A DNA stretch of 64,000 nt from assembly GCA_965644295.1 (NCBI GenBank), contig CBFFRP010000620.1, positions 5,534-69,533 on the forward strand, written 5' to 3'. The DNA is from Paraphysomonas bandaiensis. Lineage: Eukaryota; Protista; Chrysophyceae. The translations under genes and the position numbers were made by a program. Numbering within the stretch: position 1 is the first letter of the stretch; each line of letters opens with the position of its first letter. The notes beneath the pieces were generated by a model. That model ran no database searches, was not told the origin of the DNA, and worked only from the letters and a program-made list of their open reading frames with translations. Below, piece after piece: positions 2 through 26,838 of the stretch.

Positions 2-919
2 TAAGCTAGTCCAATACCAAGACTCTTTGTCCAACAAAATATAGGAACGCTGCTGGGACAGAAGCTGCATTTTGCTAACATCTAGAGCATTCTTCCCATA
101 GTTCATTTTGCAAAGCACTGACACCAGAGCCTTGGCCAGCAGTCCTGTCGAGTCTTCGGTCTGGCCAGTGTACATTTGGCTTCCATGAAGCACTCGCGCA
201 TCTGCACATCCGACATCGATATTGTCTGTGCTCAATGTGTATGATAAGTCTGTGGCCAATGCTGCAGCGTCACTGTCTGGTAACCAGCAGATTAGCCAAT
301 CCTCAAAATCGGTCAAAATACCGAATACATGTCGTAGCCCATGAAAGCTGCGTAGGCGTAACATGTAGTCGAACAGCTGACCTTGGACCTTGGGATTCTG
401 GAAAGTGGACTCCTTTGCCTTATTCTTTCTCGGCTTTTTTATTTCGACAGCCCCGACAGGGTACCCATTGCAACAAATAACCCAAATGTCCGCTTTCATG
501 GAGGCAATTTCGAGATCGCATCGCAATTTTAATTCCCCTCCAAGGTTTGCAACTGTGAGCATGTCAAGAATGACACTGTGAACAAGATTATGGATATCCA
601 TTTCTGTAGAGAACCCTACAGTATCGTCCAAAGTAAATATTTTTGATATCTTCTTTTCTAAATTCTTGATTTGTTCAGTCGAGATATCCAGCAGTCCAAA
701 ATTTAATTCACGAAAAGCACTCACACATCTGTGTCCATTGCTAATTGATGGACTTGTCCTGGACCCATCTTGGAAAACACAAGGGAGTTTTCGTTGGCCA
801 CTGAAATATTGATATAGACTGTCCTTTCGGAATTCATTCAACTCTACATGTGCCGAATTCAACTGTTCCGTCAGTTTCAACACTTGGCTTCGCAACTCTT
901 CCTCTACACTACTAGACAT
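2..919 (-). CDS. PD-(D/E)xK restriction-endonuclease-fold protein (Crinkler/CR-REase-like), 3' end outside the window
   Basis: My translation: ATG at 919 (MSSSVEEELRSQ...), 306 codons open to the window edge, so absent from the ORF track. Contains KADIWV...GAVEIKKP...QGQLFDYMLRLRSFHG...FGILT...W, i.e. a D..ExK..QxxxY arrangement. Confidence 0.7.
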   Translation of the reverse strand, partial: MSSSVEEELRSQVLKLTEQLNSAHVELNEFRKDSLYQYFSGQRKLPCVFQDGSRTSPSISNGHRCVSAFRELNFGLLDISTEQIKNLEKKISKIFTLDDTVGFSTEMDIHNLVHSVILDMLTVANLGGELKLRCDLEIASMKADIWVICCNGYPVGAVEIKKPRKNKAKESTFQNPKVQGQLFDYMLRLRSFHGLRHVFGILTDFEDWLICWLPDSDAAALATDLSYTLSTDNIDVGCADARVLHGSQMYTGQTEDSTGLLAKALVSVLCKMNYGKNALDVSKMQLLSQQRSYILLDKESWYWTSL

Positions 920-1055
920 ACCATACTATACTATACTATAATTTATTCATCACGATTCTTTTAACCATAACTGTTGCATATATGTGCATCATACTGTTGC
1001 ATATATCTAGATATGGACATCATACTGTTGCGGCTTTGAGAAGTAATAATTACAG

Positions 1056-1212
1056 TATCGTATCGGCATCCTTCGTTTATTTTTGTTCCAAGATGCCTCT
1101 AATATTGAGATAACAATTATATGTATTCCAGCCGTAGTTGTAGTTCAGTAATATAGATGAATTTTGCTTCCATTTATTTCCGAAAAATGAGATGCTGACT
1201 GCCGATACGATA
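1056..1212. mobile_element. MITE family A (Tc1/mariner-type, TA ends)
   Basis: Perfect terminal inverted repeats TATCGTATCGGCA ... TGCCGATACGATA; the interior matches 28925-29053 in inverted orientation. Confidence 0.75.
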
Positions 1213-1959
1213 GAAGGTCCGCTTTTATGAACAGAAACAGAACGGTATTATGTAGTATTACGTGTATTCTACTGTATGCTACTGCTGTATACTGTTGTAT
1301 AATTGTGTTAAAATACTGTTGTATGTATAGGTATATCTATATGTGCGTCATCTTACGTTACTTTAAACTCTCAGTAGTGCCATGAAACAAGATAATATCT
1401 ACACCAGGAGCCGATAGCGATCTACTTGCCGTCATATTCTCATCAACCCCTCCATTAATGCGATGTCTGTTCATATATATACGTGAAGGTGACTGTTAAT
1501 AGTCTCACAGACCCCCCTCACGTATATACGACACAAACAGAGACATGTGCCAGTCAATTATCTTCTGTCGTTTGCTCCATTTCATTCCGTCTACGTTTAT
1601 CCCTCTTGCGGCCCTTCATGTAGGGTAAGATTTTTCTTGAAGCCTTTGATTTTTCTGTAGGGTAAGATATCTCTCTGAGGTTCTCCCCCCCACCACAGAT
1701 CCTACAGCATTTTTATTTTACCTTTTGGAAAACGAAAGCCTTCTGAACACAAATGATGGCGCCCTCCCCATGTGTAAATTCCAGCATTCTCTCGTGATAT
1801 AGATTGCTCTTCTTGTGTAGGTATTCGCTCCGAATTATATGAAGTGCATCTTGTTCAAATTTCTGGTAAGAGTGTTTCACGTAGAGTCCCCAACGGATAC
1901 ACAAACTATACTTTGAAGCCGCTGAATATATGCAATCAGCTTTTGCTATTGACATGTTA

Positions 1960-2095
1960 TAAATAATATTGCTCTTGCGTGCTGAGGTTAAGTGTGCACT
2001 GACCCTTATACTGTCACACTATTATTATTAATAAAATAAAAAAAGTGACGATGCACAGACATCTAAGCTTCTATAAAATAAGATTGATAACTAGT
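1960..2095. repeat. old dispersed repeat family D (decayed transposon fragment)
   Basis: Core AAGTGT..ACTGACCCT..TACT.TCACAC plus flanks; recurs at ~35185-35250 (inverted) and ~58710-58850. Confidence 0.5.
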
Positions 2096-2223
2096 CTTAG
2101 TATTTAGTGTGAGATATATACTTCGTATTAGTTAGAAGATAAAACTTGTAATAAACTCCATATACGTAACGAAGCCTAATAATGTAACAGTATGGGACAG
2201 TTGGATAGTGCATCAAGGACCAA

Positions 2224-2393
2224 GGGATGTATTATTCAACCTAGTCAAATTGGTTGAATTACCTAGTCACACTACTTTTGGTTGAATAACCTAGTCAAGT
2301 AGGTGAAAAACCTAGTCATTTAATAATTCATATATTAAGTTTACAATGACTAGGTGTTTTGGGGTATTCACCTAGTCAAAAATAATAATTTCC
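2224..2393. mobile_element. MITE-like family C with iterated ACCTAGTCA subterminal motifs
   Basis: GGGA..TATTATTCAACCTAGTCAAATTGGTTGAATTACCTAGTCAC terminus, about six ACCTAGTCA motifs; near-identical termini at 27422 (inverted) and 54366. Confidence 0.65.
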
Positions 2394-2451
2394 ACTCAAA
2401 CAAGTTCCCTTCCACATTAATGAAAATGCAAGAATTGTACACATGCAATAC

Positions 2452-2738
2452 TGCCCCATATTGACAGCGTAACTAATTACTGCGTGCGGCCCCCTAGTGG
2501 GTGCGGCTGAGTGCTGCTGCGATTGCTCACCTCTACCTATGTACACATTGCTTAGTTCAGCACTACCCCACCCGGGGTCTCACTGCATATTCAGCGCTGA
2601 ATACCATGTGATAATGATGTAGCTAGTTGGGTTCAGTAGGTAGCTAGCAAATAACGTATGGGACTTAAATCAAGTATTAGTTAGGTACCCACCCGACCCC
2701 CATCCGAATCTACCTAAGTACGCGCTCAGAATGGGGCA
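2452..2738. mobile_element. MITE family B (~285 bp, CCCCAT...ATGGGG TIRs)
   Basis: TGCCCCATATTGA ... TCAGAATGGGGCA; homologous copies at 39516-39753 and 47350-47610. Possible decayed TSD AATAC/AGTGC. Confidence 0.8.
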
Positions 2739-5700
2739 AGTGCAAGATCTCGAGGACAGCGGGCTGGGCTCATCACAGAGAGCTAACAACTTCAAAGAGA
2801 GTTTGGACGAATGCCTGAAGGCCAAAGATGCTTGCGATTCTCTATCTACGCCCTCTGAAGGAGATATTGACCGTATATTGGACGACTTGGGTGAGAGCAG
2901 CGTTGAAAGTTTGAAAGAGCGGCTCGCTGAATATCGCGATCAGCTTGATAAGTTTGATAACGAGGGGAAATCATCATCTGTACGAGCTCGCAATGTCCGA
3001 GACATGGTTGTAACTTATGAGCATGCGCTATCCAAGATCAAGGCTATCCAAGCGCAGCGTCAAGCGGGCGTTGTTACACGCGCATCGGATGGAGATATTG
3101 ACCGTATATTGGACGAGTTGGGTGAGAGCAGCGTTGAAAGTTTGCAAGAGGGGCTCGCTGAATATCGCGATCAGGTTGATAAGTTTGATAAAGAAGGGAA
3201 ATCATCATCTGTACGAGCTCGCAATGTCCGTGACATGGTTGCAACTTATGAGCATGCGCTATCCAAGATCAAGGCTATTCAACCGCAGCGTCAAGCGATC
3301 GCTACGCCAAATACGGATAATACCCCATACTTTGTGCACATATTTCACGATGTGGAGAATTGTAGGTGTGAAGGGCGATTGGGTCTGAAGGCCAGAGTCC
3401 TAGTTAAATACACGTTAGAGAAGATCATGTGCGCTTTTCTCGAAGTATGGAAGCAGTGAATGTTATGGATTTCGACCGAGATCTGTCATGGAAGTGGGAT
3501 TTTTGCATCAGGCGCGACAGCAATAATGTTTTTCACCCATCGAAATCTTTCGTTCGAGATATGGACACTGTTGGGGCAGTACTTATCGATGTGCCGGGTA
3601 TAAAGAAAGGAGAGGTTGATAAGCGCATTGAGCGTAACATGAGAGCATTTGTAGCTGATTACCAAAAAATGAATGACGATGCGAAACAAAAAACTGCAGC
3701 TGTCCTCATTGCCAGTGATGGTGACTACTCCTCTGTTGTAGACGATTTGAAACGGATGGGTATACTTGTGATTTTAATTTATGATCCCGCGGAATGTTCT
3801 GATGTTTTCAAATCCATTGTGAGTCCTCGCTACTCTCTAGGTGTGTGGCAAGAAATCCTTGGTGCCAGTAAACCTATGGCGTCTGGAGTTAATAACACTA
3901 CTGTGGAAATATTTGGAAACCCACAGAATGATAAGGAGTATGCCTCTCTAGTTTTTGCTCTTGCCGATTTCATGTATGTAAGGGGACAGGCCAGCCGTTT
4001 CTATCCCGTTGACATGAGAGAGCTAATTAGAGATAAACTAGAAATCGGGGCGATTAATACTAAGTATGGGGGCTTGGACAGTTTTTGTGGTAGAAGTAAT
4101 GGAGCTCTTTGCTACCAGGCTAATAATCAGGGAGGATTAGTTTCTGTAGCTTTGCACTTTCTACTGGAGTTTTGGGTACGCTTAGAGGGGGGAAAGGTTC
4201 CCGCCAATCGATTGGGTACGTTATTATTGCACTTTTTAAAGTCGTATTCCTATTCTTATTTACTTTGAAGTCTGGCTGCTAATTGTGATGCATGTAGGTG
4301 AATTCTATAAGAATTTTTCACGGTGCGCCGAAAAAAATGTGGTCAAAAACCAATTTAGAGAAAGTGGGGGGGCTCCTGCACTCTGTTCTGCCACTGGTGG
4401 AAGTATGATATGGATCCAGTGTCCCGACGATAGCACCGTGAATGCACAGGTAACAGTGACGAGACTACCAATTCGTGCATGTGGACTATTAGCTGGCTAC
4501 TACACCACAACCACCTCAAGTACCTCTCAAAGCCAACTGTTGATGACAACATGTTGCTTAAGGTGTCACCCGATGTCGTATTGAAGCTGTGTACTGATTC
4601 TCAGGGACCGTATTAGCGACTATCGATTAATCACTTTGAATCTTCACAGCAACCAATTTCTGATCCAGATGCTCTGTTGAAAGAAAGCAAATTGTGTGTA
4701 GATAAGTTTCTAAGTGGCCTACAGATCTCACCACTAGCCGAAGTGCCGGTGCCACGCTCAGTTCTTCTGGGTGACACTGAATTGCGAACGATAAGGAAAC
4801 AATATCAAGTGTACTGCAATGTGTACAGGCGTAGGCAGGAGAACACGTGTGGCGATGATGCCATTTTTATGCTTCTTCCTAAACATATGTCAGCAGGACC
4901 GAATGTACCGGCGAATCGATCTCCTCGACGACACCCAAATAAGAGTGCTTATGATATAGAGGCATTTACGCATTCACACCTAGTGAAACTAGGCATCAAC
5001 CGCGATACTCATATTGTGACATATTGAACATACGAAAGGAACCAGTGCTACATGCTTATATCGTGCTATCTATCTCGAGATGCACTTGACCAGGATAGGA
5101 GAAACAGGCTCCTCAATTCATTTTGTGAATCACTGCCTAGTCCTGAAGCGCGTGAAGTTGAGTCTATTAAGCTTATTTATCCTTCCAGAAATGCGGAGGG
5201 GGCGGAAAAAGTCATGGATCGTATTAACGAACTTCGTCATTGCGAACGGGAATTAGATGTATTCGATGCCCCGGGTGGTCCTCCAGACACTTCCTCCTAC
5301 CGCCCTGCTGTCGAACGATTCGTTTTTATGGATGCAGTCTGGCGCTTTTTGATTAGTGAGATCAATGATATTGCACCTGGATTACAGCTCAAAATATCTC
5401 AGCGTCAACAAAAGCGCGTCATAGCTGTACGTGGTCTAGAAAAGATGGTTGAGATTGCGGAGACACGTTTAAGAGAACGGCGTCGGAAAATATTGGAAAA
5501 AGCCATTGCAATTCCGAAGGAAAAACAGAGCGAGGACGTCAATGACGCACTTAATGACAACCTGAACTCAATTTTTTCCAGCTGGTTTAGAGCATATGAT
5601 CCTGTCCAAGACGGTACGTATTCGCTGGATACTGGATCCAACACTAACGAAACGTCTGTTTCTAGTGTAAGTTTGGGTAGTAATGCAATCCTCATTTCGT

Positions 5701-8551
5701 CGTTAATGGTATCGTATGTAGTCTACATCAGTCCGGATGCCTCTGGCGAAATTCTATGTAGGACAGAGAGAGGTTTGTATTTTGGCTCTGCATGAACGCC
5801 AGGACCAATGGCAGCTCCTTGTCAAAACAGCCCAAAATATTATTGACAGCTTTACAAGGAGAGAAATATCTGTAAAGGGTGAAAATCCGACTAGATTCAA
5901 AAAAGCACTCAGTAAATTTGATCTATTGTCTTATAAATATATATGACAAGGACACCAAGAATATTATTTTGCATGGTGCCAGGGAATCGGTTTTGGGAGC
6001 AAGTGCTTACATTGAACAAGAAATGACTGGACAGCAGCCCGAGTCTGCCGATATAGACTGTTCGGAATTCCCGCATAGCGATAGAATTGCCAGATATCTT
6101 CGTCGAGATGGTGAGGGATGTACTTTAGCACATTTACAGAACTTTGTGTCTCAGACTTTTAAATCGATGACTCTAACGATAGGCTCACAGTGAATCAGAT
6201 TCCAACAACTCCACAATTCTTACGCTTCGTGGTCCTCAAAAAATGATACCAGCAGCTATTGAGGCAACGAAGGCGAAATTACGAAAAAATGTAGCTGATC
6301 TCGAATTATCAGTGGTTGACTGCTTTCACGATTATCAGGTGAACTGGTTGATGCAAAATGCGACGGATATAGGCGACGAAAATGATACTGTGGTGGATTT
6401 TGTCAGTGAAGACTTAATTTCAACCGATGGCGATCCGCAGTTGAAATGCCAGTGCGAGATGGGTCCAATATCTGTTTACGTAGTTCATTGTGATTTTATT
6501 GAGACTGCATCTTATGGATGTAACACAATTGTCAACTCCGCCAACTCACAATTGCAGCATGACGGTGGTATTGCGAAGGCAATATCAGATGCTGCTGGCC
6601 CCGAACTTGTTACACGGAGTGTAATTCCAAAAGTCATATTCCTGCTGGTGGAGCGACAGCGACGGAATCGTATCGTTTGCATGATCACGGATTCAAGAGT
6701 ATTATACATACGGTGGCTCCGGTATGGTCTTCTTCTTCTAACGATTCTGTGAGGATAGGCGAACGCAATTTGTTGTATAATGCTGTGAAGAATGCCTTGT
6801 GTGAAGCTCAGTTAAAAGGCGCGGAGGCCGTAGCGATTCCAGGTGTTGGTATGGGTTTATTCAAGTGGCCGGTGGAAGATGCTGCGACAGAAATCGTACT
6901 TGCAATCGGAGAGTTCATTCATGACCAAACAGCGGCTGATGACGCCCAGAAATCTCTGAAAAAAATAGTTCTTTTTGACAACATTGAGTCCAGGGTATCT
7001 GCGTTCGTATCAGCACTAAAGGCATTGCAGGATCACACCATTGGTGCGTCGGTGTCTATCCCTACACAATTCCCTCCTCCACCACCACCTTCAGTGCCTG
7101 AGTATCAGTGGTTCCGGAAAGTGTGGACTCATGAGATTTCGGAACAGCCAGATGGGGTGGTTCGTACCGTGTATGACGAATCTTTGGTTGAGCATGTTGT
7201 TGTTCCTTATGATTATGATCAAGTTATGCAAATGGAGCGAGCATTTCTTGCTGGAGACTCGTCGGTTACTCTGGTTGGTGATGCCTACGGAGCAAGAAAT
7301 AATAAACAATACAAAATTGACTTCTCACTAAAAACACAAACAACGATTCCACCCTTGAATGACCTTTCTGTACGTCCGATTTTCCGCAGACCTGTAATCG
7401 ATCCTAAGAATATTCCGATGTACAATGAGCGGTGTAAAGAGCAAATACTCGTTAGATCTGACATCGTTGAGAGGGTTATACCTACGAACTTAAGAACTGG
7501 TGCTTTTGTAAAAGGTCGAGATGGGATACAGACTCTAAACTCCTTACAAAGAGAGAATGGCGTGGCAATATTCGGTAATTATTTTGTCATTTATTGTCGT
7601 GATTGGATGTAAATATATTTTGTGTAAATAGGTACCTCTGATGCGATAAAGAAAACCATGATTGCTCTCGATAGTTTCATTTTGGAAAATAAAACTTCCA
7701 ACACTGTTGAATTACGTCTTCTACGAACTTCCAATATTCAATTCGAAACCGCACTTAATGAACTCCAGGAACTAAGCAGAGAAATGAATGTCGTGATCAG
7801 CTCCAGCAATGATGCCGACTGGAATGTTATTATTGAAGGTTTAGGGGAAGTTGTAGTGCTCCGGGCGCAGACAAAAGTGCTTGAATATGAGAGGAATAAA
7901 GTCTATAATGACAGCCGTGCCCTTTCTCTACCTGATACCTGGGGGTATGAGTTAACTGATGACGATTGCTTCCCTGACCCTTCACTCAAAGAGCTAGAGC
8001 CAATTAGCAGCGAGTACATCGAGGCTGCTAAATGCTTTGGAAATGACAATTTTAAGGCAGACATAGTGCGCATTGAACGTGTGCAAAACGTAGAGCTCTA
8101 CCGTCTTTACGACACGAAGCGCAAAGAGGTTGCTCGTAAAAACGGAGGCAATGCGAATGAGATTCTTCTGAAGCATGGAACACGTTATACACTTCCGAAA
8201 ACTGTCTGGAATAGTGGTTCGAGGACAAACACATATGGTTTTGATTTTCGTTGGTCTAGTGCCAATAATTATTATGGTAGAGGATCGTACTTTACTGACG
8301 ATACTGCTGGTTACGCTAATAGCTACTCGTATAAATGCGAGAACTCAGACGAAAGACAGATTTTTCTGGCATATGTCGCCCAGGGTTGTATTGAGCAGAA
8401 GGATACCACAGATAGCAACATAAAAACCCCTTCAGCGGGTTACCAGTCTGTGCGTGGTCCGATTGATGGGTCTATTCAAGGGCTTATTGTTTACGAACTG
8501 CATCAAAGCTATCCTGCTTACGTTGTTACGTACAAAAGAGCGCCCAAGTAA
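2731..8551 (+). pseudogene. disrupted multidomain gene: helical repeats - NYN RNase - LOTUS/OST-HTH-like - KH-like - Macro - WWE - PARP (ADP-ribosyltransferase)
   Basis: NYN: FVHIFHDVENC...KKGEVDKRI...VLIASDGDY. Macro: IVNSANSQLQHDGGIAKAI...IHTVAP...AVAIPGVGMGLF. WWE: VPYDYDQVMQMERAF...YKIDFSLKTQ. PARP: LKHGT, YYGRGSYF, YELHQSYPAYVVTY. Frame-restoring introns at 4216-4297 and 7575-7631. About six frameshifts and in-frame stops at 4614 (TAG) and 5025 (TGA). Confidence 0.8.
2854..3300 (+). repeat. intragenic tandem duplication, 231-bp (77-aa) period
   Basis: GGAGATATTGACCGTATATTGGACG at 2860 and 3091; GDIDRILD...HALSKIKAIQ occurs twice. Confidence 0.95.
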
Positions 8552-8586: not shown

Positions 8587-8783
8587 TAGGGTTAGGGTAC
8601 TAGTTTATACTTCCTTTTCTTTATATATACTCTTGACTTAATAATTCTGTTTTCTCCGTACTATTCGATTAGGGTTAGTTTTAGGGTTAGGGTTAGGGTA
8701 CTAGTTTATTCTTCCTTTTCTTTATATACTCTTGACTTAATAATTCTGTTTTCTCCATACTATTCGATTAGGGTTAGGGTTAT
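8587..8783 (+). repeat. interstitial telomere-like TTAGGG units within a ~101-bp tandem duplication
   Basis: Short (TTAGGG)n runs near 8587, 8669-8698 and 8768-8782, separated by two copies of an AT-rich spacer. Confidence 0.8.
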
Positions 8784-9718: not shown

Positions 9719-12700
9719 TTACAAGAGTATATCAGGAAATCTCTTGCAAAACTCCGCATCGACCAACACCATAATAGAAGAGTCAAATGTAGTAACTCGA
9801 CCGTAGCAATGAACGTCATAGGCACTCCATTCATATGTAGACCGAAACAAAGGGCAATATAGATCAATACGCAATTTACGACGACCCGCCCACCGTACAT
9901 AGTTACACTCCACAACATAAATAGTCGTATAACAATTCGGTAAGTCTAGTGTATCATAAAAATCGGCACCCCAAGCACGCAAATCTACATAAATAGTTTG
10001 ACCAGGAGACACTCCCTCAATAGGAATACGTTTCATACGAGTACGTTCAGCTTTAGCCATGGTAGCAGTAAATAGTAACGGAAAAAGATATGGTCGTTGT
10101 TCACAGTATAATTGGAAATGTGAAGTAGAGGAAATATCTAGGGACCATGGTATCCACAACAAAGAACCATCCTCAAACTGTACTTGAAAATCCATTGTAG
10201 TACGCACTTCAGGATCTCCTCTATGAGCAACGATAGAACGCACTGTATGTTGGTTGAAATCAATTTGGGCTACACGATATGCATCATCAAGTGTTCCAAA
10301 GAACGGTTTAAGCCATGACATGTGCAATACCACTTCAAAACGCATGACAATATGAACACATGTAACATCAGCTTTATAAGTTGACACCACTTCATAAGGT
10401 CCCTTAAAACGAGGATATAACTTCGTAGGCTTGTGGCGCTTTGGATTTAATTGGAATAATACAAGTTGGCCCGGTTGATATTGGGTTAAGCTCTCAACTG
10501 GCGTCTTAGATTTACGCTTGTTTTGTATCTTACGCTGAACCTCATTTGCAATTTCACGAATCGTCTCAAGATGTTCATTAAACTTGGCAATATACTCCAT
10601 AGAGCTACTCACATTAACATTATCCGTTAATTTAAAGTATGGCATAGCAGCAGTACCAAATGTAAACTCAAATGGCGACAAACCAGTCTCACTACTAACT
10701 TCATCATTAAGAATGAACTGAATCAGTAAGTAACATTCTGGATCTCCCCATACATCCTGTAAACGTTCATCATGCACCAATGCACTTAGAAACCTTAGCG
10801 TCTCTTGATGAGTTCTCTCAACCATATTTGATTCATGTCGATCTACTAAAGACATTCGAAAACGCACACCAAACCATTTCAAAAGCAATTGTACAACCTC
10901 TGCTGTAATATTAGATCCAGGATCTGATATCATAACTTCTGATATTCCATATGTAACAAAATAACTGAACAATGCACGTGCAACTCCAACCGCTTTGTAA
11001 TCCTTAGCTGGATAAAGACCGATTAAACGAGAAGGCATCTGTTTGACAACATGTATGCAGCAATGTCCATACTTGTCCGGCGGTGAAACTGTAAGCGTAT
11101 CAAAACCTACAAATTGACGACAATGCTCTGAGTCAAGTGCTCTAATCGGCGCTTGTAATGAAGTACTCATACCCGCATTCAGTTTCTGGCATATTGGACA
11201 ACGATCAATCAAATCTTGAATAACTTCCGTAGTTATTGTATGTCCAGGAAATACTTTGGACAATTTCAACCATGTCCTCTTAGTACCATGATGCCCCATA
11301 CGACCGTTATGAACCAAATCAAACGCTTCCTTAACTGATTTAGGCCGTAAATTTTGACTCGCTAGTTCTTCCAGAGCTGCTATGATCTCTGAAGAAAATA
11401 CAGCACAACATGCTATATCATCTGATTCAGAACTCCATTCTCCTATACAATTTAATTCAATCAGTTGATCCTCCGGTAGCAAATCTGTATTCTCAAATAT
11501 AACAATTTCCCCATATATTAGACTCTCCTCAGGAAAACAGTCTATACTTATGGACAACAACATAACATGAGCCACAGCCGATTCCTGATCTTTACGAGAT
11601 AACCAATCAGCAAATCTGTTTAACTTTCCCTTGAAATGAAGCAAGTCGAAATTGAAATTCTGTATAAACATCCGCATGCGTACTATTCTGTCAACAACCG
11701 AAACTTCCATCCATTTAAGATTGGCGTGATCCGTCATGATCGTGAACTTTTTACCTCTCAAATAATACGACAAAGCATATACACAAAAGAATATTCCAAA
11801 ACACTCCTTGTCAATAGTGGACCACTTCAATGTTGGTTCCGAAAATTTCTTCGACACCATTGCAATTACTTGATAGAATTCTTGACCATTGGCGTCAATG
11901 AAAATTTGTAACAACACACCTCCACATGCATAAAACGAAGCATCTGTCATCAAGATCCATCTTAAAGAATAGTCGGGATGATACAGAGTAAGAGATTTTA
12001 AAATCGCCTCTTTAAATCTACTAAATTCCTCCCTGTAATTTACTTTCCAACAATTCTCATTCCAGTCAAAATTCTTCTTCGTCATGTCATGTAACTTATG
12101 AGTAAGGTCACTATATAACGGAATAAAAGGTTTAAAATATATTGCCGCTCCAAGAAATCTCTGCATTTGTTTCGTCTTGTTTTTCCCTTCTGGAAATTCA
12201 ATTGCAGTTACTGATAATTTTCGGGCCTCAGTTAATTGGTAAGTGTTGTCCTTACAAAGATAGCCGAAAAATTCCACTGATGAATAGCCAAATTTGCTTT
12301 TCGACAATTTCAACACGACGTTATAATAAGTACATTTTTTAATAACTTTCTTGAACTTCTCAATAGCATCCTGATAGTCATGCGCTAACACCAGTAAGTT
12401 GTCAAATATCACTACCATCCACTCTGAGAATTCATTGAAAATATCAGACACTACATGCATCAAAACTCCACTTGCCGGAGAAACTCCCTCTGGCATAAAC
12501 TTTGGTTCGAACTGACCCCATGGAGTTTGAACTGACAACAGTGCTGAAACTGATTCATGAAGTCTAATCCCATGGAAAGCATTACATATATCCAAATCAA
12601 TGAACACCTTATACCCAGCTGCTTTATGTAATTCTTTTATAACATCTGGTATGGGATAATGCGGACTTTCAATCTCTAAATTAACACGCCTGTAATCACC

Positions 12701-13681
12701 ACATATTCGAATAAAAGGTTTCGTAGCCTTGGGTGCTACTACAATTGGAGATGCATAAGGACTCGTACTGGGACGATAAAAGTATCCGCACATCCTATTG
12801 AACTCCTCCTTCGTACGTTCATATAACATAGGTGGTATCCTTCTCATATTCTTGGGTTTAATTCTATCAGGAATAGTACTTTTCACCTTTAATTTTAACT
12901 CAGGAACATGCTGAATTCCAGTCCACTCTCTAGGAACAAAAACATCAACTGCATCCTCTCTCAAAACTCTCAATATATCAGTTTGTTGAGCGAAATCAGG
13001 ATGTACTTTTGATTCTAGTTCACTAAAATATTTCTCCCTAGCCTCATCCACTGACTGTTCCAAAAAAGTCACTAAACTTCCAAAACTACATGGTTCAGGG
13101 ATCATATCATCTTCCTCTGACTGTTCTGGAATTGGATTCTCCCATGGATTACAGACTGGTCCTGACGACATATATCTCCTAAGTTCGTCAATGTCATCCC
13201 CAATATTGGCAAGAACTTCTATTTCACTTAAATTAACAGATTGTTCAACACTCAGTGATGCTTTCTTAATCATATTCATAAATAGTTCGGAAAAATGCTC
13301 ACAGATTGCCGGTAATCCTATAATAATGTCCTTTGCCAAACCGTCCAAAACATACAGTGAAAGTTGTGCTTTGTAGGTCTTACCATCATCTTCAAAAGCA
13401 ATTGTAACAGGAATATACCCTTGTAGTTCAATCTGATGTCCGTCTGCTACTTTGACCCTCAATTTTTTATGTACCATATCCTTTAACAATTTGTCCCCAC
13501 ACTTCTTAACAAAATTTGATGAAATAAAATTATCCGAAGATGATCCGGAATCAAATAAAACCATTTCCACATTAATCTTATCACCACAGTTATTTATTAT
13601 CATTCCTTGCCTATGTACAGCATTACGAAATCTGCTGGAAGTATCATTGTAATTTCGCATAGCTGCTATCACTGATTGTGC
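9719..13681 (-). CDS. pol: Pol: protease, reverse transcriptase, RNase H, integrase, chromodomain, C-terminal extension
   Basis: LFDSGSS; YASPIVV/ICGDYRRVN/DLDICNAF/IFDNLL; TDASFY...TDHANL...ADWLSR; HNGRMGH...CPIC; GFDTL/SDPGS/VERTH; FKGPYEV; VRSIVAHRG...FQVQFEDG...WIPW. Frame is open from the codon after the gag stop. Confidence 0.96.
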   Translation of the reverse strand, partial: AQSVIAAMRNYNDTSSRFRNAVHRQGMIINNCGDKINVEMVLFDSGSSSDNFISSNFVKKCGDKLLKDMVHKKLRVKVADGHQIELQGYIPVTIAFEDDGKTYKAQLSLYVLDGLAKDIIIGLPAICEHFSELFMNMIKKASLSVEQSVNLSEIEVLANIGDDIDELRRYMSSGPVCNPWENPIPEQSEEDDMIPEPCSFGSLVTFLEQSVDEAREKYFSELESKVHPDFAQQTDILRVLREDAVDVFVPREWTGIQHVPELKLKVKSTIPDRIKPKNMRRIPPMLYERTKEEFNRMCGYFYRPSTSPYASPIVVAPKATKPFIRICGDYRRVNLEIESPHYPIPDVIKELHKAAGYKVFIDLDICNAFHGIRLHESVSALLSVQTPWGQFEPKFMPEGVSPASGVLMHVVSDIFNEFSEWMVVIFDNLLVLAHDYQDAIEKFKKVIKKCTYYNVVLKLSKSKFGYSSVEFFGYLCKDNTYQLTEARKLSVTAIEFPEGKNKTKQMQRFLGAAIYFKPFIPLYSDLTHKLHDMTKKNFDWNENCWKVNYREEFSRFKEAILKSLTLYHPDYSLRWILMTDASFYACGGVLLQIFIDANGQEFYQVIAMVSKKFSEPTLKWSTIDKECFGIFFCVYALSYYLRGKKFTIMTDHANLKWMEVSVVDRIVRMRMFIQNFNFDLLHFKGKLNRFADWLSRKDQESAVAHVMLLSISIDCFPEESLIYGEIVIFENTDLLPEDQLIELNCIGEWSSESDDIACCAVFSSEIIAALEELASQNLRPKSVKEAFDLVHNGRMGHHGTKRTWLKLSKVFPGHTITTEVIQDLIDRCPICQKLNAGMSTSLQAPIRALDSEHCRQFVGFDTLTVSPPDKYGHCCIHVVKQMPSRLIGLYPAKDYKAVGVARALFSYFVTYGISEVMISDPGSNITAEVVQLLLKWFGVRFRMSLVDRHESNMVERTHQETLRFLSALVHDERLQDVWGDPECYLLIQFILNDEVSSETGLSPFEFTFGTAAMPYFKLTDNVNVSSSMEYIAKFNEHLETIREIANEVQRKIQNKRKSKTPVESLTQYQPGQLVLFQLNPKRHKPTKLYPRFKGPYEVVSTYKADVTCVHIVMRFEVVLHMSWLKPFFGTLDDAYRVAQIDFNQHTVRSIVAHRGDPEVRTTMDFQVQFEDGSLLWIPWSLDISSTSHFQLYCEQRPYLFPLLFTATMAKAERTRMKRIPIEGVSPGQTIYVDLRAWGADFYDTLDLPNCYTTIYVVECNYVRWAGRRKLRIDLYCPLFRSTYEWSAYDVHCYGRVTTFDSSIMVLVDAEFCKRFPDILL

Positions 13682-15304
13682 TCAAAGGTCATCCAAAGGA
13701 TTGTCATCTCCTTGTTGATCCTCTTCAACATCAAGTTGATCTCTGGTAAGGATACGTACATCTCCAGGACGCTTAACATCACCTGGATTCCTTTTTAATT
13801 GCCCTGGGTTACCACCAAAACGGCGTTGAGGAGGCGTTGTTAGACTTGGCCTTGGCATTACCACCATACCCATTTTCGTGTTCATGACTTTCAAAGCATC
13901 AATGAGAATAGCCTTATCATGAGAAAATTTACATGATTTGTCTTTGCAACCTCCCTCTTGCATCATTTCTCTAAAACATGGAGCAGATTTCTGTGCTTCA
14001 ACAGTTGCCAGCAAATCCTCTTCATGTTTTAGTACGCATAACTCATCATCAATAATTTCCTCCTCGTCACAATACTCATTTACGTCATCAACATGTTTGA
14101 GTTCCTTAACTTTCTTATTATCCTTATCACTCGAAAACTTAAATCGACTCTTAAACTGATTATACTTCTCATGTAATTCTCGAGTAATTTTCCAGATTTT
14201 AAAAAACTCAGACAAAAACAGTTGCACAGAAGTAAAGTTTTCTGTCCTCAAAAGTCTTCTGAAAGTATCACGCATGCAATAAGGAATCAAACTAAACCAT
14301 TCAGCTAAAGAACCACCTCTCTTAGTTGTAATCAGAGGAATACTATCTCTCAGGTCATTCTGCTTGGCTGCTTCCTCTAGAAACTCATACCTCTGTAAGA
14401 ACTTAGTTTCCAGAATACAAAGATCCTCGTCAACCTTACGAAAATTCTCCAACTTTTCCATTGAGACTTTATACGACTCACATGACGAAGCTAACATTTT
14501 GTTGAATTGCATCACATCAAATGGCCTAAAATGACGTCTTGCTGCCGCAATAAGATCCGTAATACTGGCATCATTACATTCAATCTGACTAGGATACACA
14601 TTGGGTTTAATTTCCTTAAGAGTATGCCTAATCAACTCCTTAGCCCTTCCATCCAACAACGCATAAACTGATGGTATAGGTCTATTACGATTCATTTTCT
14701 CAAACTCCGCAATTTTCTCCAAAAACACCAAGAAACCATCAAGAGTAATTACTGACAGCTTTATACCATACTTCTTTGGATCCTTTTCTGCTGCTACTGT
14801 AACCTCACTTGAGCCGTTTCTCTCAATTTCCTGTAAAGCTTCTTGCAATGTAAGACGCTGATGTGTACCCACTGGCCGCTCATCTTCTGATTTAAGAGCC
14901 AATGTCGCATTCATAACACCTTCACGCACAGCATTCTCAATACGTGTCTGCAACAAATCAGGGTCTATATACTGCTGCTCACGCTGTTCAATTGCTGTAA
15001 CTACAGGCTCTAGTCCAACAACTTCATTACCATTTGATTTCGACTCCTCGAATGGTATTTCTGAGAACTGATCAGCTTGTACGATTTCTGAATTTGCTCT
15101 CGATGACCTTCCAGACCTCCTCTGTCGAAGCTCCTCGAGACTCTGTTGAACATACTGATTGAACACCTGTTGCTCGTGATAACGTTGCTCATTACGTTGT
15201 TCACGCTGCTCATTACGTTGTTCAATATTATCCAAACGCTGAAACAGTTGCTGGATATACAGTGGAATCTGCTCCTCCTCGGCTCCATCATCTGTTCCCT
15301 CCAT
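13682..15304 (-). CDS. gag: Gag-like protein with N-terminal coiled coil and C-terminal CCCH finger
   Basis: First ATG at 15304; lies between the 5' LTR and pol; C-x9-C-x4-C-x3-H at 13919-13978. Confidence 0.88.
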   Translation of the reverse strand: MEGTDDGAEEEQIPLYIQQLFQRLDNIEQRNEQREQRNEQRYHEQQVFNQYVQQSLEELRQRRSGRSSRANSEIVQADQFSEIPFEESKSNGNEVVGLEPVVTAIEQREQQYIDPDLLQTRIENAVREGVMNATLALKSEDERPVGTHQRLTLQEALQEIERNGSSEVTVAAEKDPKKYGIKLSVITLDGFLVFLEKIAEFEKMNRNRPIPSVYALLDGRAKELIRHTLKEIKPNVYPSQIECNDASITDLIAAARRHFRPFDVMQFNKMLASSCESYKVSMEKLENFRKVDEDLCILETKFLQRYEFLEEAAKQNDLRDSIPLITTKRGGSLAEWFSLIPYCMRDTFRRLLRTENFTSVQLFLSEFFKIWKITRELHEKYNQFKSRFKFSSDKDNKKVKELKHVDDVNEYCDEEEIIDDELCVLKHEEDLLATVEAQKSAPCFREMMQEGGCKDKSCKFSHDKAILIDALKVMNTKMGMVVMPRPSLTTPPQRRFGGNPGQLKRNPGDVKRPGDVRILTRDQLDVEEDQQGDDNPLDDL

Positions 15305-15372
15305 AACACTCAAAATGAATTAAACTCAACAATATCCAATGTTTACTGTTCTTCTACTCAGAGTAATATTAC

Positions 15373-15828
15373 TGTGATGTTTCTGAGAACTAGAAACACG
15401 TGAAAGACAAAAAGCTCTCTCTAAAAACGTTTTAACAGATTTAGAGTGTACGCCAGCGGGCTGCTACACTGTTAAGTCTACCAGCGGGTAGAACTCCTCC
15501 ACACAAACGCAAACCGCGAATGAGCTTAATTGAATCGTTATTAAAACGTTATATAGAAAAGAATGAGTAACACAGCTATACATCTCTACAGTGTAACACA
15601 CACATACACATACATCATGTTCAGCATTTCACTTCAACACACAACACACCCGATTAGAAGTATTTTATCCGGTATGTATGTACAGCTTCAACACTCTGAG
15701 AGTAGAAACTGAAAATAAAACTGAAAACTGAAAATACTAAAACACTCTGTACGTGTTAGAGAGTACAACAGAAGAGTAACATATCATACTACTAATAACG
15801 CAGTATAAGTAACCAGTACTGCGTGACA
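15373..15828 (-). repeat. 5' LTR (456 bp)
   Basis: Partner of 9033-9487; TATA-like TCTATATAAC followed by Inr-like TCATTC on the minus strand. Confidence 0.97.
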
Positions 15829-18800
15829 CACACTCATGATACTGTAAGACTGATGACACACTCATGATACTGTAAGACTGATGACACACTCATGATGCTG
15901 ATGTTCTGATGACACACTCATGATGCTGATGTTCTGATGACACACTCATGATACTGTAAGACTGATGACACACTCATGATGCTGTAAGACTGATGACACA
16001 CTCATGATGCTGATGTTCTGATGACACACTCATGATGCTGATGTTCTGATGACACACTCATGATACTGTAAGACTGATGACACACTCATGATGCTGTAAG
16101 ACTGATGACACACTCATGATGCTGATGTTCTGATGACACACTCATGATACTGTAAGACTGATGACACACTCATGATACTGTAAGACTGATGACACACTCA
16201 TGATGCTGTAAGACTGATGACACACTCATGATGCTGATGTTCTGATGACACACTCATGATACTGTAAGACTGATGACACACTCATGATGCTGTAAGACTG
16301 ATGACACACTCATGATGCTGATGTTCTGATGACACACTCATGATACTGTAAGACTGATGACACACTCATGATACTGTAAGACTGATGACACACTCATGAT
16401 GCTGATGTTCTGATGACACACTCATGATACTGTAAGACTGATGACACACTCATGATGCTGATGTTCTGATGACACACTCATGATACTGTAAGACTGATGA
16501 CACACTCATGATACTGTAAGACTGATGACACACTCATGATGCTGTAAGACTGATGACACACTCATGATGCTGATGTTCTGATGACACACTCATGATGCTG
16601 TAAGACTGATGACACACTCATGATGCTGTAAGACTGATGACACATTCATGATGCTGTAAGACTGATGACACACTCATGATGCTGATGTTCTGATGACACA
16701 CTCATAATGCTGATGATCTAATGACACACTCATGATACTGTAAGACTGATGACACACTCATGATACTGTAAGACTGATGACACACTCATTATGCTGATGT
16801 TCTGATGACACACTCATGATACTGTAAGACTGATGACACACTCATGATACTGTAAGACTGATGACACACTCATGATGCTGTAAGACTGATGACACACTCA
16901 TGATGCTGATGTTCTGATGACACACTCATGATGCTGTAAGACTGATGACACACTCATGATGCTGTAAGACTGATGACACATTCATGATGCTGTAAGACTG
17001 ATGACACACTCATGATGCTGATGTTCTGATGACACACTCATAATGCTGATGATCTAATGACACACTCATGATACTGTAAGACTGATGACACACTCATGAT
17101 ACTGTAAGACTGATGACACACTCATTATGCTGATGTTCTGATGACACACTCATGATGCTGATGTTCTGATGACACACTCATGATACTGTAAGACTGATGA
17201 CACACTCATGATGCTGTAAGACTGATGACACACTCATGATGCTGATGTTCTGATGACACACTCATGATGCTGATGTTCTGATGACACACTCATGATACTG
17301 TAAGACTGATGACACACTCATGATACTGTAAGACTGATGACACACTCATGATGCTGATGTTCTGATGACACACTCATGATACTGTAAGACTGATGACACA
17401 CTCATGATGCTGATGTTCTGATGACACACTCATGATACTGTAAGACTGATGACACACTCATGATGCTGTAAGACTGATGACACACTCATGATGCTGATGT
17501 TCTGATGACACACTCATAATGCTGATGATCTAATGACACACTCATGATACTGTAAGACTGATGACACACTCATGATGCTGTAAGACTGATGACACACTCA
17601 TGATGCTGATGTTCTGATGACACACTCATGATGCTGATGTTCTGATGACACACTCATGATACTACTGTAAGACTGATGACACACTCATGATGCTGATGTT
17701 CTGATGACACACTCATGATACTGTAAGACTGATGACACACTCATGATGCTGTAAGACTGATGACACACTCATGATGCTGATGTTCTGATGACACACTCAT
17801 GATGCTGATGTTCTGATGACACACTCATGATACTGTAAGACTGATGACACACTCATGATACTGTAAGACTGATGACACACTCATGATGCTGTAAGACTGA
17901 TGACACACTCATGATGCTGATGTTCTGATGACACACTCATGATGCTGTAAGACTGATGACACACTCATGATACTGTAAGACTGATGACACACTCATGATG
18001 CTGTAAGACTGATGACACACTCATGATGCTGATGTTCTGATGACACACTCATAATGCTGATGATCTAATGACACACTCATGATACTGTAAGACTGATGAC
18101 ACACTCATGATACTGTAAGACTGATGACACACTCATTATGCTGATGTTCTGATGACACACTCATGATGCTGATGTTCTGATGACACACTCATGATACTGT
18201 AAGACTGATGACACACTCATGATACTGTAAGACTGATGACACACTCATGATGCTGATGTTCTGATGACACACTCATGATGCTGATGTTCTGATGACACAC
18301 TCATGATACTGTAAGACTGATGACACACTCATGATGCTGTAAGACTGATGACACACTCATGATACTGTAAGACTGATGACACACTCATGATGCTGATGTT
18401 CTGATGACACACTCATGCTACTGTAAGACTGATGACACACTCATGATGCTGATGTTCTGATCACACACTCATGATACTGTAAGACTGATGACACACTCAT
18501 GATGCTGATGTTCTGATGACACACTCCTGATGCTGATGTTCTGATGACACACTCATGATACTGTAAGACTGATGACACACTCATGATGCTGATGCTCTGA
18601 TGACACACTCATGATACTGTAAGACTGATGACACACTCATGATGCTGATGTTCTGATGACACACTCATGATACTGTAAGACTGATGACACACTCATGATG
18701 CTGATGTTCTGATGACACACTCATGATACTGTAAGACTGATGACACACTCATGATGCTGATGCTCTGATGACACACTCATGATACTGTAAGACTGATGAC

Positions 18801-21800
18801 ACACTCATGATGCTGATGTTCTGATGACACACTCATGATACTGTAAGACTGATGACACACTCATGATGCTGTAAGACTGATGACACACTCATGATGCTGA
18901 TGTTCTGATGACACACTCATGATACTGTAAGACTGATGACACACTCATGATACTGTAAGACTGATGACACACTCATGATGCTGATGTTCTGATGACACAC
19001 TCATGCTACTGTAAGACTGATGACACACTCATGATGCTGATGCTCTGATGACACACTCATGATGCTGATGTTCTGATGACACACTCATGATACTGTAAGA
19101 CTGATGACACACTCATGATGCTGATGTTCTGATGACACACTCATGATGCTGTAAGACTGATGACACACTCATGATGCTGTAAGACTGATGACACACTCAT
19201 GATACTGTAAGACTGATGACACACTCATGATACTGTAAGACTGATGACACACTCATGATGCTGATGTTCTGATGACACACTCATGATACTGTAAGACTGA
19301 TGACACACTCATGATGCTGATGTTCTGATGACACACTCATGATACTGTAAGACTGATGACACACTCATGATACTGTAAGACTGATGACACACTCATGATG
19401 CTGATGTTCTGATGACACACTCATGATACTGTAAGACTGATGACACACTCATGATGCTGATGTTCTGATGACACACTCCTGATGCTGATGCTGTAAGACT
19501 GATGACACACTCATGATGCTGATGTTCTGATGACACACTCATGATGCTGATGTTCTGATGACACACTCATGATACTGTAAGACTGATGACACACTCATGA
19601 TGCTGTAAGACTGATGACACACTCATGATGCTGATGTTCTGATGACACACTCATGATACTGTAAGACTGATGACACACTCATGATGCTGTAAGACTGATG
19701 ACACACTCATGATGCTGATGTTCTGATGACACACTCATGATACTGTAAGACTGATGACACACTCATGATGCTGATGTTCTGATGACACACTCATGATACT
19801 GTAAGACTGATGACACACTCATGATGCTGATGTTCTGATGACACACTCCTGATGCTGATGCTGTAAGACTGATGACACACTCATGATGCTGATGCTCTGA
19901 TGACACACTCATGATGCTGATGTTCTGATGACACACTCATGATACTGTAAGACCGATGACACACTCATGATGCTGATGTTCTGATGACACACTCATGATG
20001 CTGTAAGACTGATGACACACTCATGATGCTGTAAGACTGATGACACACTCATGATACTGTAAGACTGATGACACACTCATGATACTGTAAGACTGATGAC
20101 ACACTCATGATGCTGATGTTCTGATGACACACTCATGATACTGTAAGACTGATGACACACTCATGATGCTGATGTTCGGATGACACACTCATGATACTGT
20201 AAGACTGATGACACACTCATGATACTGTAAGACTGATGACACACTCATGATGCTGATGTTCTGATGACACACTCATGATACTGTAAGACTGATGACACAC
20301 TCATGATGCTGATGTTCTGATGACACACTCCTGATGCTGATGCTGTAAGACTGATGACACACTCATGATGCTGATGTTCTGATGACACACTCATGATGCT
20401 GATGTTCTGATGACACACTCATGATACTGTAAGACTGATGACACACTCATGATGCTGTAAGACTGATGACACACTCATGATGCTGATGTTCTGATGACAC
20501 ACTCATGATGCTGTAAGACTGATGACACACTCATGATACTGTAAGACTGATGACACACTCATGATGCTGATGTTCTGATGACACACTCATGATACTGTAA
20601 GACTGATGACACACTCATGATGCTGATGTTCTGATGACACACTCATGATACTGTAAGACTGATGACACACTCATGATGCTGATGTTCTGATGACACACTC
20701 ATGATGCTGATGTTCTGATGACACACTCATGATGCTGATGTTCTGATCACACACTCATGATACTGTAAGACTGATGACACACTCATGATGCTGTAAGACT
20801 GATGACACACTCATGATGCTGATGTTCTGATGACACACTCATGATACTGTAAGACTGATGACACACTCATGATACTGTAAGACTGATGACACACTCATGA
20901 TGCTGATGTTCTGATGACACACTCATGATACTGTAAGACTGATGACACACTCATGATGCTGTAAGACTGATGACACACTCATGATGCTGATGTTCTGATG
21001 ACACACTCATGATACTGTAAGACTGATGACACACTCATGATGCTGTAAGACTGATGACACACTCATGATGCTGATGTTCTGATGACACACTCATGATGCT
21101 GTAAGACTGATGACACACTCATGATACTGTAAGACTGATGACACACTCATGATGCTGATGTTCTGATGACACACTCATGATACTGTAAGACTGATGACAC
21201 ACTCATGATGCTGATGTTCTGATGACACACTCATGATGCTGATGTTCTGATCACACACTCATGATACTGTAAGACTGATGACACACTCATGATGCTGTAA
21301 GACTGATGACACACTCATGATGCTGATGTTCTGATGACACACTCATGATACTGTAAGACTGATGACACACTCATGATGCTGATGTTCTGATGACACACTC
21401 ATGATGCTGATGTTCTGATCACACACTCATGATACTGTAAGACTGATGACACACTCATGATGCTGTAAGACTGATGACACACTCATGATGCTGATGTTCT
21501 GATGACACACTCATGATACTGTAAGACTGATGACACACTCATGATACTGTAAGACTGATGACACACTCATGATGCTGATGTTCTGATGACACACTCATGA
21601 TACTGTAAGACTGATGACACACTCATGATGCTGTAAGACTGATGACACACTCATGATGCTGATGTTCTGATGACACACTCATGATACTGTAAGACTGATG
21701 ACACACTCATGATACTGTAAGACTGATGACACACTCATGATGCTGATGTTCTGATGACACACTCATGCTACTGTAAGGTAAGACTGATGACACACTCATG

Positions 21801-24800: not shown

Positions 24801-26838
24801 ACTGTAAGACTGATGACACACTCATGATGCTGATGTTCTGATGACACACTCATGATACTGATGTTCTGATGACACACTCATGATACTGTAAGACTGATGA
24901 CACACTCATGATACTGTAAGACTGATGACACACTCATGATGCTGATGTTCTGATGACACACTCATGATACTGTAAGACTGATGACACACTCATGATACTG
25001 TAAGACTGATGACACACTCATGATGCTGATGTTCTGATGACACACTCATGCTACTGTAAGACTGATGACACACTCATGATGCTGATGTTCTGATGACACA
25101 CTCATGATGCTGATGTTCTGATGACACACTCATGATACTGTAAGACTGATGACACACTCATGATGCTGATGTTCTGATGACACACTCATGATACTGTAAG
25201 ACTGATGACACACTCATGATGCTGTAAGACTGATGACACACTCATGATACTGTAAGACTGATGACACACTCATGATACTGTAAGACTGATGACACACTCA
25301 TGATGCTGATGTTCTGATGACACACTCATGATACTGTAAGACTGATGACACACTCATGATGCTGATGTTCTGATGACACACTCATGATACTGTAAGACTG
25401 ATGACACACTCATGATACTGTAAGACTGATGACACACTCATGATACTGTAAGACTGATGACACACTCATGATGCTGTAAGACTGATGACACACTCATGAT
25501 ACTGTAAGACTGATGACACACTCATGATGCTGATGTTCTGATGACACACTCCTGATGATGATGCTGTAAGACTGATGACACACTCATGATACTGTAAGAC
25601 TGATGACACACTCATGATGCTGATGTTCTGATGACACACTCATGATACTGTAAGACTGATGACACACTCATGATGCTGATGTTCTGATGACACACTCATG
25701 ATGCTGATGTTCTGATGACACACTCATGATACTGTAAGACTGATGACACACTCATGATGCTGTAAGACTGATGACACACTCATGATGCTGATGTTCTGAT
25801 GACACACTCATGATGCTGTAAGACTGATGACACACTCATGATACTGTAAGACTGATGACACACTCATGATGCTGATGTTCTGATGACACACTCATGATAC
25901 TGTAAGACTGATGACACACTCATGATACTGTAAGACTGATGACACACTCATGATGCTGATGTTCTGATGACACACTCATGATGCTGATGTTCTGATGACA
26001 CACTCATGATGCTGATGTTCTGATCACACACTCATGATACTGTAAGACTGATGACACACTCATGATGCTGTAAGACTGATGACACACTCATGATGCTGAT
26101 GTTCTGATGACACACTCATGATACTGTAAGACTGATGACACACTCATGATACTGTAAGACTGATGACACACTCATGATGCTGATGTTCTGATGACACACT
26201 CATGATACTGTAAGACTGATGACACACTCATGATGCTGTAAGACTGATGACACACTCATGATGCTGATGTTCTGATGACACACTCATGATACTGTAAGAC
26301 TGATGACACACTCATGATACTGTAAGACTGATGACACACTCATGATGCTGATGTTCTGATGACACACTCATGCTACTGTAAGACTGATGACACACTCATG
26401 ATGCTGATGCTCTGATGACACACTCATGATGCTGATGTTCTGATGACACACTCATGATACTGTAAGACTGATGACACACTCATGATGCTGATGTTCTGAT
26501 GACACACTCATGATGCTGTAAGACTGATGACACACTCATGATGCTGATGTTCTGATGACACACTCATGATACTGTAAGACTGATGACACACTCATGATAC
26601 TGTAAGACTGATGACACACTCATGATGCTGATGTTCTGATGACACACTCATGATACTGTAAGACTGATGACACACTCATGATGCTGATGTTCTGATGACA
26701 CACTCATGATGCTGTAAGACTGATGACACACTCATGATGCTGATGTTCTGATGACACACTCATGATGCTGTAAGACTGATGACACAATCCTCATGATACT
26801 GTAAGACTGATGACACACTCCTGATGCTGATGTTCTGA
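15829..26838. repeat. 28-bp satellite array, ~11 kb (~390 units)
   Basis: Constant 19-mer CTGATGACACACTCATGAT plus a variable 9-mer (ACTGTAAGA, GCTGATGTT or GCTGTAAGA); rare marker variants and higher-order duplications. Confidence 0.99.

Follow-up and report, generated by a model that had tools for sequence, protein, structure and literature searches.

The NYN-Macro-PARP locus

The DNA analysed here is a stretch of 64,000 nucleotides (nt) from Paraphysomonas bandaiensis (assembly GCA_965644295.1, contig CBFFRP010000620.1, positions 5,534 to 69,533 of the forward strand), referred to below as the window; the organism is a chrysophyte, within the Stramenopiles, in keeping with the protist host proposed in a preliminary description made from the sequence letters. 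Positions 2731 to 8551 of its + strand carry a disrupted gene, which begins with an ATG at 2731, ends with a stop codon at 8549-8551 and is broken into eleven stop-free pieces in changing frames, all of them colinear and all on the same strand, as that description had stated. The locus is interpreted as a young pseudogene, whose parent family encodes a single polypeptide running from an NYN nuclease domain through Macro and WWE domains to a PARP catalytic domain (probability about 0.8). The copy in the window is itself unable to make this polypeptide.

Relatives were obtained by an exhaustive HMMER search of 1.84 billion protein representatives with the NYN exon (window:3420-4214) as query, which returned 30 proteins (designated P below; their contigs are designated L). 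From ATG to stop, the pseudogene is colinear with residues 102-1608 of P0001, the closest relative, and with residues 164-1787 of P0007, and tblastn aligned it colinearly with residues 171-1608 and 164-1787 of these proteins, respectively, from NYN through to the end of PARP.

The encoded regions begin with a helical, coiled-coil-like N-terminus (2731-3327, frame 1), which can be aligned to the P0002 N-terminus, starting at residue 26, and contains an in-frame tandem duplication (2860-3297) of a 231-nt, 77-amino-acid (aa) unit, carried 1.9 times at 95% identity in the window and once in P0001. This region is followed by the NYN domain, of MARF1/LabA type (3328-3870; frame 1 to ~3441, frame 3 from ~3453), and by two tandem winged-helix-like modules (3930-4440), the second of which is split by an intron. 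Next comes a middle region (4617-6440), conserved colinearly across the family, in which several modules resemble the KH type found in PARP14. It leads to a Macro domain closest to PARP14 macrodomain 1 (6477-6990; frame 3 to 6608, frame 2 from 6617) and to a WWE domain (7100-7390), which Pfam matches below its cut-off on the window piece and above it on the relative P0017. The last exon (7632-8551) is intact and comprises a conserved linker (7632-8040) and the PARP catalytic domain (8042-8548).

Introns, frameshifts and stop codons

Interruptions of the reading frame were mapped with a dynamic programme that aligns proteins to genomic DNA and in which frameshifts, introns and stops are permitted, run with P0001, P0002, P0003, P0007, P0017 and the open reading frames (ORFs) of contigs L005 and L002. 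The same set of about five frameshifts and two in-frame stops was recovered with as many as six independent homologues. When distant relatives were aligned to L002 and L005 themselves, spurious introns arose at gaps, and these alignments were excluded from intron calls on those contigs.

Two introns were assigned, and a third is probable. Intron 1 (4216-4297, 82 nt, GTACGT...TGTAG, phase 1) gives on excision an RLG/EFY junction that reproduces P0001 exactly, and intron 3 (7575-7631, 57 nt, GTAATT...AAATAG, phase 1) lies at the position of the gap between ORFs in both L002 and L005. The probable intron 2 (5667-5721, 55 nt, GTAAGT...TGTAG, phase 0) carries the reading from frame 3 to frame 1 and has an uncertain acceptor, with alternatives ending at 5770 or 5772.

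The remaining breaks are of a different kind. Frameshift 1 (3441-3456, frame 1 to frame 3) lies inside the NYN domain next to a T4 run, where the homologues are uninterrupted and an intron cannot fit, and frameshift 2 (4440-4470, frame 1 to frame 3) falls where the family's conserved IGxGY motif is gone. An in-frame TAG (4614-4616) has residues homologous to P0007 and P0001 on either side, and an in-frame TGA (5025-5027) stands in a segment that aligns without gaps with P0001, P0002 and P0003. Frameshift 3 (5934-5942, frame 1 to frame 2) occurs within an (AT)4 run, with residue 1105 of P0001 abutting both sides, and frameshift 4 (6166-6195, frame 2 to frame 3) lies in a KH-like module, where ~34 nt stand against 14 residues of P0001. 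Frameshift 5 (6609-6626, frame 3 to frame 2) interrupts the Macro domain; direct reading places it at 6609-6616, between GPELVT and ECNSK, its placement varies with the homologue up to 6626, and again an intron cannot fit.

Read from the ATG at 2731, the homologous frame is lost at ~3441 within NYN, and translation would terminate at a frame-1 stop at 3457-3459. Removal of the introns leaves the frame closed, since the approximately five frameshifts and two stops fall outside them. As aligned against the homologues, the frame breaks between the fragments are mostly genuine frameshifts and stop codons and not introns, and the working module that the preliminary description had envisaged at this locus gives way to a pseudogene.

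Three other explanations of the breaks were considered and rejected. Short GT-AG introns at every frame change failed for five of the eight junctions, at which the homologues are continuous and the extra DNA amounts to 0-30 nt. An 11-nt GT...AG segment at 6609-6619 is far below the 44-82 nt of real introns in this genome. An alternative genetic code, with TGA or TAG read as sense, is at odds with the other long ORFs of the window, which have no in-frame stops.

Age of the probable inactivation and rival explanations

The breaks are confined to this gene. An EMP70 gene 24 kb away, aligned with the same programme, encodes 634 aa with introns of 44, 49 and 53 nt and zero frameshifts or stops, and long ORFs elsewhere in the window, ~12 kb of them, are likewise undisrupted; the nearby retrotransposon carries clean ORFs of 1317 and 543 aa. 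The restriction of seven disruptions to this gene, with clean controls, points to a genuine pseudogene and makes a general fault of the assembly unlikely.

Inactivation appears to have been recent. The window keeps 87% of the family-invariant columns in NYN and the winged-helix modules, 89% in Macro-WWE and 96% in PARP, within the 74-100% of intact members. By an estimate from usual indel-to-substitution ratios, five indels and two stop substitutions correspond to roughly 1% neutral divergence, which is too little to erode conserved residues. Retention of conserved residues at the level of intact members, together with an expected divergence of ~1%, thus points to a recent loss.

Several observations weigh against a decayed gene of this family. 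One frameshift adjoins a T4 run and another lies in an (AT)4 run, both typical sites of error, and neither the last exon nor any catalytic motif is affected, as would also hold for a working gene. The LOTUS and KH assignments considered below are weak, and the relatives that define the family are environmental sequences without organism assignment. The first two of these points, with the retention of catalytic and invariant residues at the level of intact relatives, would suit a gene that is intact and functional in the organism, the breaks being a local assembly fault or a strain- or haplotype-specific defective allele. This alternative is considered unlikely, though it is the strongest of the rivals, as it must accommodate seven disruptions in 5.8 kb against none in the EMP70 gene or the ~12 kb of other ORFs. 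Two of the disruptions are base substitutions to stops, three frameshifts lie outside simple runs, and one frameshift coincides with the loss of the IGxGY motif. The protein library, although it includes Paraphysomonas MMETSP proteins, moreover contains no relative more than 35% identical, so that the transcriptome proteins of this genus offer no close expressed copy.

A second alternative is that a truncated product survives, the 3' part (WWE and PARP, 6617-8551, with one intron) being expressed from an internal start as a stand-alone mono-ADP-ribosyltransferase (mono-ART). There are zero disruptions past 6626, the PARP exon has the highest retention of family-invariant residues of the three regions given above, and an ATG at 7658 opens an ORF of 297 aa. 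This idea is nevertheless quite improbable: the first in-frame ATG past the last frameshift falls inside the macrodomain, a clean tail of 1.9 kb is expected by chance in a young pseudogene, and the 297-aa ORF was not found by exact look-up among called genes.

A single-chain family in uncultured relatives

The reading of the locus as a pseudogene of a one-gene fusion is carried by the relatives, in which the parts are joined. P0007 is a single uninterrupted ORF of 1797 aa with NYN, Macro and PARP, and P0017 is a single ORF of 1941 aa, in which the NYN region aligns to the query at 8e-7 and Macro, WWE and PARP are recognised by Pfam. P0001 (1679 aa) contains NYN-like, KH_PARP14_3, Macro and WWE matches and is followed on contigs L002 and L003 by a 317-aa PARP ORF 75 nt downstream; P0002 (1050 aa), on contig L005, is followed by a 652-aa Macro ORF and then by a 303-aa PARP ORF; and P0165 (1803 aa) combines NYN and Macro. 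Contigs L002/L003, L005 and L006 are colinear with P0007 and P0017.

The family is accordingly described as one predicted polypeptide of ~1700-1950 aa joining NYN, Macro and PARP. The fusion proposed in the preliminary description is upheld at this level, and the separate genes for the NYN and Macro-WWE-PARP parts that it had named as the contrary outcome were not what the homologues showed, since P0007 and P0017 span both. It is very improbable that two neighbouring genes merely resemble one here, for which the sole argument is that the window fragments are unreadable as a single ORF, given that the P0007 and P0017 ORFs run through both parts and that the interval from NYN to Macro is conserved and colinear in all relatives.

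The relatives that were looked up derive from metagenome or read-archive assemblies, with the exception of one NCBI record. Their contigs span 37% to 66% G+C, a range indicating that the family is spread over several different organisms. With the NYN exon as query, a word search in the length range 146-464 aa returned nothing, as did scans of viral contigs and of JGI metagenome patterns.

NYN, winged-helix-like and KH-like modules

Pfam was run on the window pieces singly. The NYN piece scores 19.6 bits against PF01936, under the cut-off of 24.2, because the frameshift splits the domain; the cut-off is passed by P0003 (27.2 bits), P0007 (26.2), P0002 (24.7) and P0165 (29.6). A profile check of NYN, on which the preliminary description had staked its assignment, thus gives a weak match on the split window piece and a match above the cut-off on intact relatives. 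The acidic residues are kept in the window, namely the D of DVEN (3349-3351), the D of EVD (3618-3620) and those of SDGDY (3714-3728; D at 3717-3719 and 3723-3725), and they align with family-invariant columns corresponding to a PIN-like active site. All the motifs listed in the preliminary description (DVEN, EVD, SDGDY, NSAN, GGIA and GLF) were found.

An AlphaFold model of residues 150-700 of P0007, built from nine sequences, has a predicted local distance difference test (pLDDT) score of ~85-94 over NYN. Foldseek matched this model to the MARF1 NYN structures 6fdl and 5yaa (E 2e-6 to 9e-6, TM 0.72-0.77) and then to the LabA-like 2qip, which supports the PIN-like alpha/beta fold of the domain in this relative. 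The predicted nuclease is, by family profile and modelled fold, a member of the MARF1/LabA NYN subfamily (PF01936) and not of the KHNYN/N4BP1 type.

Beyond NYN, the same model contains two tandem alpha1-beta1-alpha2-alpha3-beta2-beta3 modules with pLDDT 60-85. The preliminary description had called these segments LOTUS/OST-HTH-like, an identity that sequence searches did not confirm: OST-HTH (PF12872) gave no Pfam match at E up to 10 in any of nine family segments, the family-profile search of PDB sequences yielded no LOTUS protein, and the Foldseek list for the model, which is dominated by NYN, held no LOTUS entry. "LOTUS-like" is here a guess at the level of the fold, taken from the predicted winged-helix topology. 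The modules also appear to exist apart from the nuclease, since P0008 (596 aa, JGI metagenome) has no NYN and seems to be built of repeats of the same winged-helix module.

The KH-like character of the middle region is loosely supported by Pfam and Foldseek. In the window itself Pfam matches KH_PARP14_3 at E 0.0085, below the cut-off, and none of the matches across the window and relatives to KH_PARP14_3, _6 and _2 or to KH_KRR1_2nd reaches its cut-off (E 0.002-0.17). A model of residues 680-1310 of P0001 (pLDDT 70) contains at least two predicted beta-alpha-alpha-beta-beta-alpha units. Foldseek gave this model weak matches with a common KH theme (E 8e-4 to 5e-2), to Dim2p, GLD-3, FMRP KH1-2 and the N4BP1 KH (6q3v, E 0.05), which span E 3e-3 to 5e-2, and to secretin N domains.

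Macro, WWE and PARP domains

In the C-terminal half, the window pieces score 23.4 and 52.9 bits for Macro (PF01661; cut-off 22) and 48.7 bits for the PARP catalytic domain (PF00644; cut-off 26.7). The WWE piece (PF02825) reaches 17.2 bits against a cut-off of 21.1, and the homologous segment of P0017 reaches 35.7. From the domain list of the preliminary description, Macro and PARP are therefore recovered above their cut-offs and NYN and WWE more weakly, with KH-like segments at the level of weak matches and LOTUS without a sequence match.

The macrodomain contains NSAN (6534-6545), GGIA (6564-6575) and a GVGMGLF loop, forming the hydrolase-type motifs N-x6-GG and G-x-G-x-F, and its best solved relative is PARP14 macrodomain 1 (3vfq/3q6z). 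On these motifs it is assigned as a putative hydrolase resembling PARP14 macrodomain 1 (MD1).

Between WWE and PARP, a conserved module of ~130 aa (window 7632-8040) also occurs in L002, L005, P0007 and P0017; on visual inspection it resembles a further KH-like unit (...GLGxxxVxxAxxxV...).

Among solved structures, the last exon is nearest to the catalytic domains of PARP12, PARP14 and PARP15 (E 2e-13 to 1e-10). Its triad consists of H (8174-8176), Y (8288-8290) and G (8480-8482), as the preliminary description had read it, and the H and Y are invariant in an alignment of the family with fish PARP14. P0007 has Ala as its third residue, whereas the window, L002, L005 and P0017 have Gly; the Glu of the poly-ADP-ribose-forming H-Y-E triad is absent throughout. 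As every relative has G or A at this position, the non-Glu residue is a family trait and not a product of decay. By established triad rules, the predicted ART domain is a mono-ART at most.

Comparison with known systems

The closest parallel is PARP14 (with PARP9 and PARP15, PARP clade 3). The order of KH-like modules, hydrolase-type macrodomain, WWE and C-terminal mono-ART without the catalytic Glu is shared, and a writer and an eraser would stand in one chain in both; among named proteins, those closest to P0007 are PARP14 proteins of fish (25% identity over 31% of the query). The family differs in having one macrodomain where PARP14 has three, in the third triad residue (G, or A in P0007, compared with L in PARP14), in the ~130-aa module between WWE and ART, which PARP14 does not have, and in the addition of the N-terminal NYN nuclease and two winged-helix modules. 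Pfam found no RRM and a single Macro match in the window, P0001, P0007 and P0017; by this comparison they are not PARP14 orthologues, in which WWE-ART would be preceded by three macrodomains, eight KH domains and three RRMs. PARP14 has been described as uniting the writing, reading and erasing of mono-ADP-ribose in a single chain, in which MD1 strips from proteins and nucleic acids the marks that PARP14 itself has placed (PMC10499325).

The nuclease belongs to the same NYN subfamily (PF01936) as that of MARF1 (limkain b1) and of bacterial LabA-like NYN proteins. In MARF1, NYN is accompanied by LOTUS/OST-HTH domains; small winged-helix-type modules follow the nuclease here too, but without an OST-HTH sequence match. 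Macro, WWE and PARP belong to the present family and are absent from MARF1.

KHNYN and N4BP1, acting with ZAP (PARP13), offered another comparison in the preliminary description, since a KH and NYN-fold RNase there acts on RNA with a WWE-PARP-fold protein. The KHNYN/N4BP1 nuclease is of the Zc3h12a-type NYN subfamily, not PF01936, the activities reside on separate proteins and the ART domain of ZAP is inactive, leaving this parallel as an analogy only.

The preliminary description knew of no account of this architecture, and NYN, Macro and PARP in one protein are indeed absent from the searchable literature. A combination of RNase, Macro and PARP has its nearest precedent in lineage-specific proteins of cnidarians (HEPN-TRADD-N-Macro-PARP), which, like the oyster DED-TRADD-N-KH-RRM-macro-ART proteins, have been interpreted as acting against invaders (Kaur et al. 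2021, PMC8195603). The cnidarian proteins share with the present family a predicted RNase effector, Macro and PARP in one polypeptide, whereas the nuclease there is HEPN and here NYN, Death-like as well as TRADD-N adaptors of the cnidarian and oyster proteins are absent here, and the host there is an animal and here a stramenopile. With the cnidarian HEPN-Macro-PARP already published, the fusion of RNase, Macro and PARP is a known theme, to which the present family adds a new nuclease and a new lineage.

Surroundings of the locus

The pseudogene lies in a repeat-rich part of the window. About 35 nt past its stop codon, a 99-nt tandem repeat (8587-8777, 1.9 copies) contains short TTAGGG arrays, an interstitial telomere-like sequence for which chance expectation is none. 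A Ty3/gypsy-like element of the long terminal repeat (LTR) retrotransposon type follows on the - strand (9719-15313), with an intact pol ORF of 1317 aa in the order protease, reverse transcriptase, RNase H, integrase and an upstream ORF of 543 aa without Pfam match. Directly beyond it lies an 11-kb satellite (15828-26829) of ~390 copies of 28-nt units with 87% matches. This setting fits a decaying gene.

Further along, the intact TM9SF/EMP70 gene (32515-34547) shares 95% identity with a Paraphysomonas MMETSP1103 transcript (taxid 36769) and 60-75% with proteins of other chrysophytes and ochrophytes. Three regions with long ORFs look like ordinary host genes, encoding an IBR (RBR-type E3) domain (29180-30919), a Dictyostelium-cAMP-receptor-like G-protein-coupled receptor domain (40531-41550) and a PP2C phosphatase fragment (60418-61206). 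Two further ORFs, of 599 aa (42263-44062, - strand) and 510 aa (55395-56927, + strand), match no Pfam family, the former lying where the G+C content of the window is highest (48%). Scans for tRNA and Rfam families found nothing.

Possible function and significance

The domain order of intact members runs from a helical N-terminus and a predicted NYN endoribonuclease, through a pair of winged-helix modules and several KH-like ones, to a single macrodomain, WWE and a predicted H-Y-G mono-ART. The KH and winged-helix modules may bind RNA, possibly foreign or transposon RNA, which NYN would then cleave. The ART domain may mono-ADP-ribosylate itself, partner proteins or RNA ends, with the macrodomain erasing its mark by analogy with PARP14 MD1 and WWE reading ADP-ribose. 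An antiviral or anti-transposon role of the family is inferred only. It is a tentative suggestion that intact members such as P0007 and P0017 serve heterotrophic and algal protists as innate-immunity effectors in a single chain, in which the KH and winged-helix modules would sense viral or retroelement RNA, the mono-ART and the macrodomain would set and reset an ADP-ribose switch, and NYN would destroy the RNA.

The copy in the window itself adds only that such genes are gained and lost quickly, and its decay within a repeat-rich region is compatible with, though not proof of, a conflict-type gene. The wider meaning lies with the family, which extends PARP14-like architecture to stramenopiles and to further eukaryotes that are uncultured. 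PARP14 and other macro-PARPs are regarded mainly as animal antiviral proteins; if the proposed function is correct, a PARP14-like antiviral logic, coupled to a nuclease of its own, exists outside animals. With its MARF1-type RNase, hydrolase-type macrodomain, WWE and mono-ART on a single chain, the family would also offer a compact system in which coupling between ADP-ribosylation and RNA cleavage could be tested.

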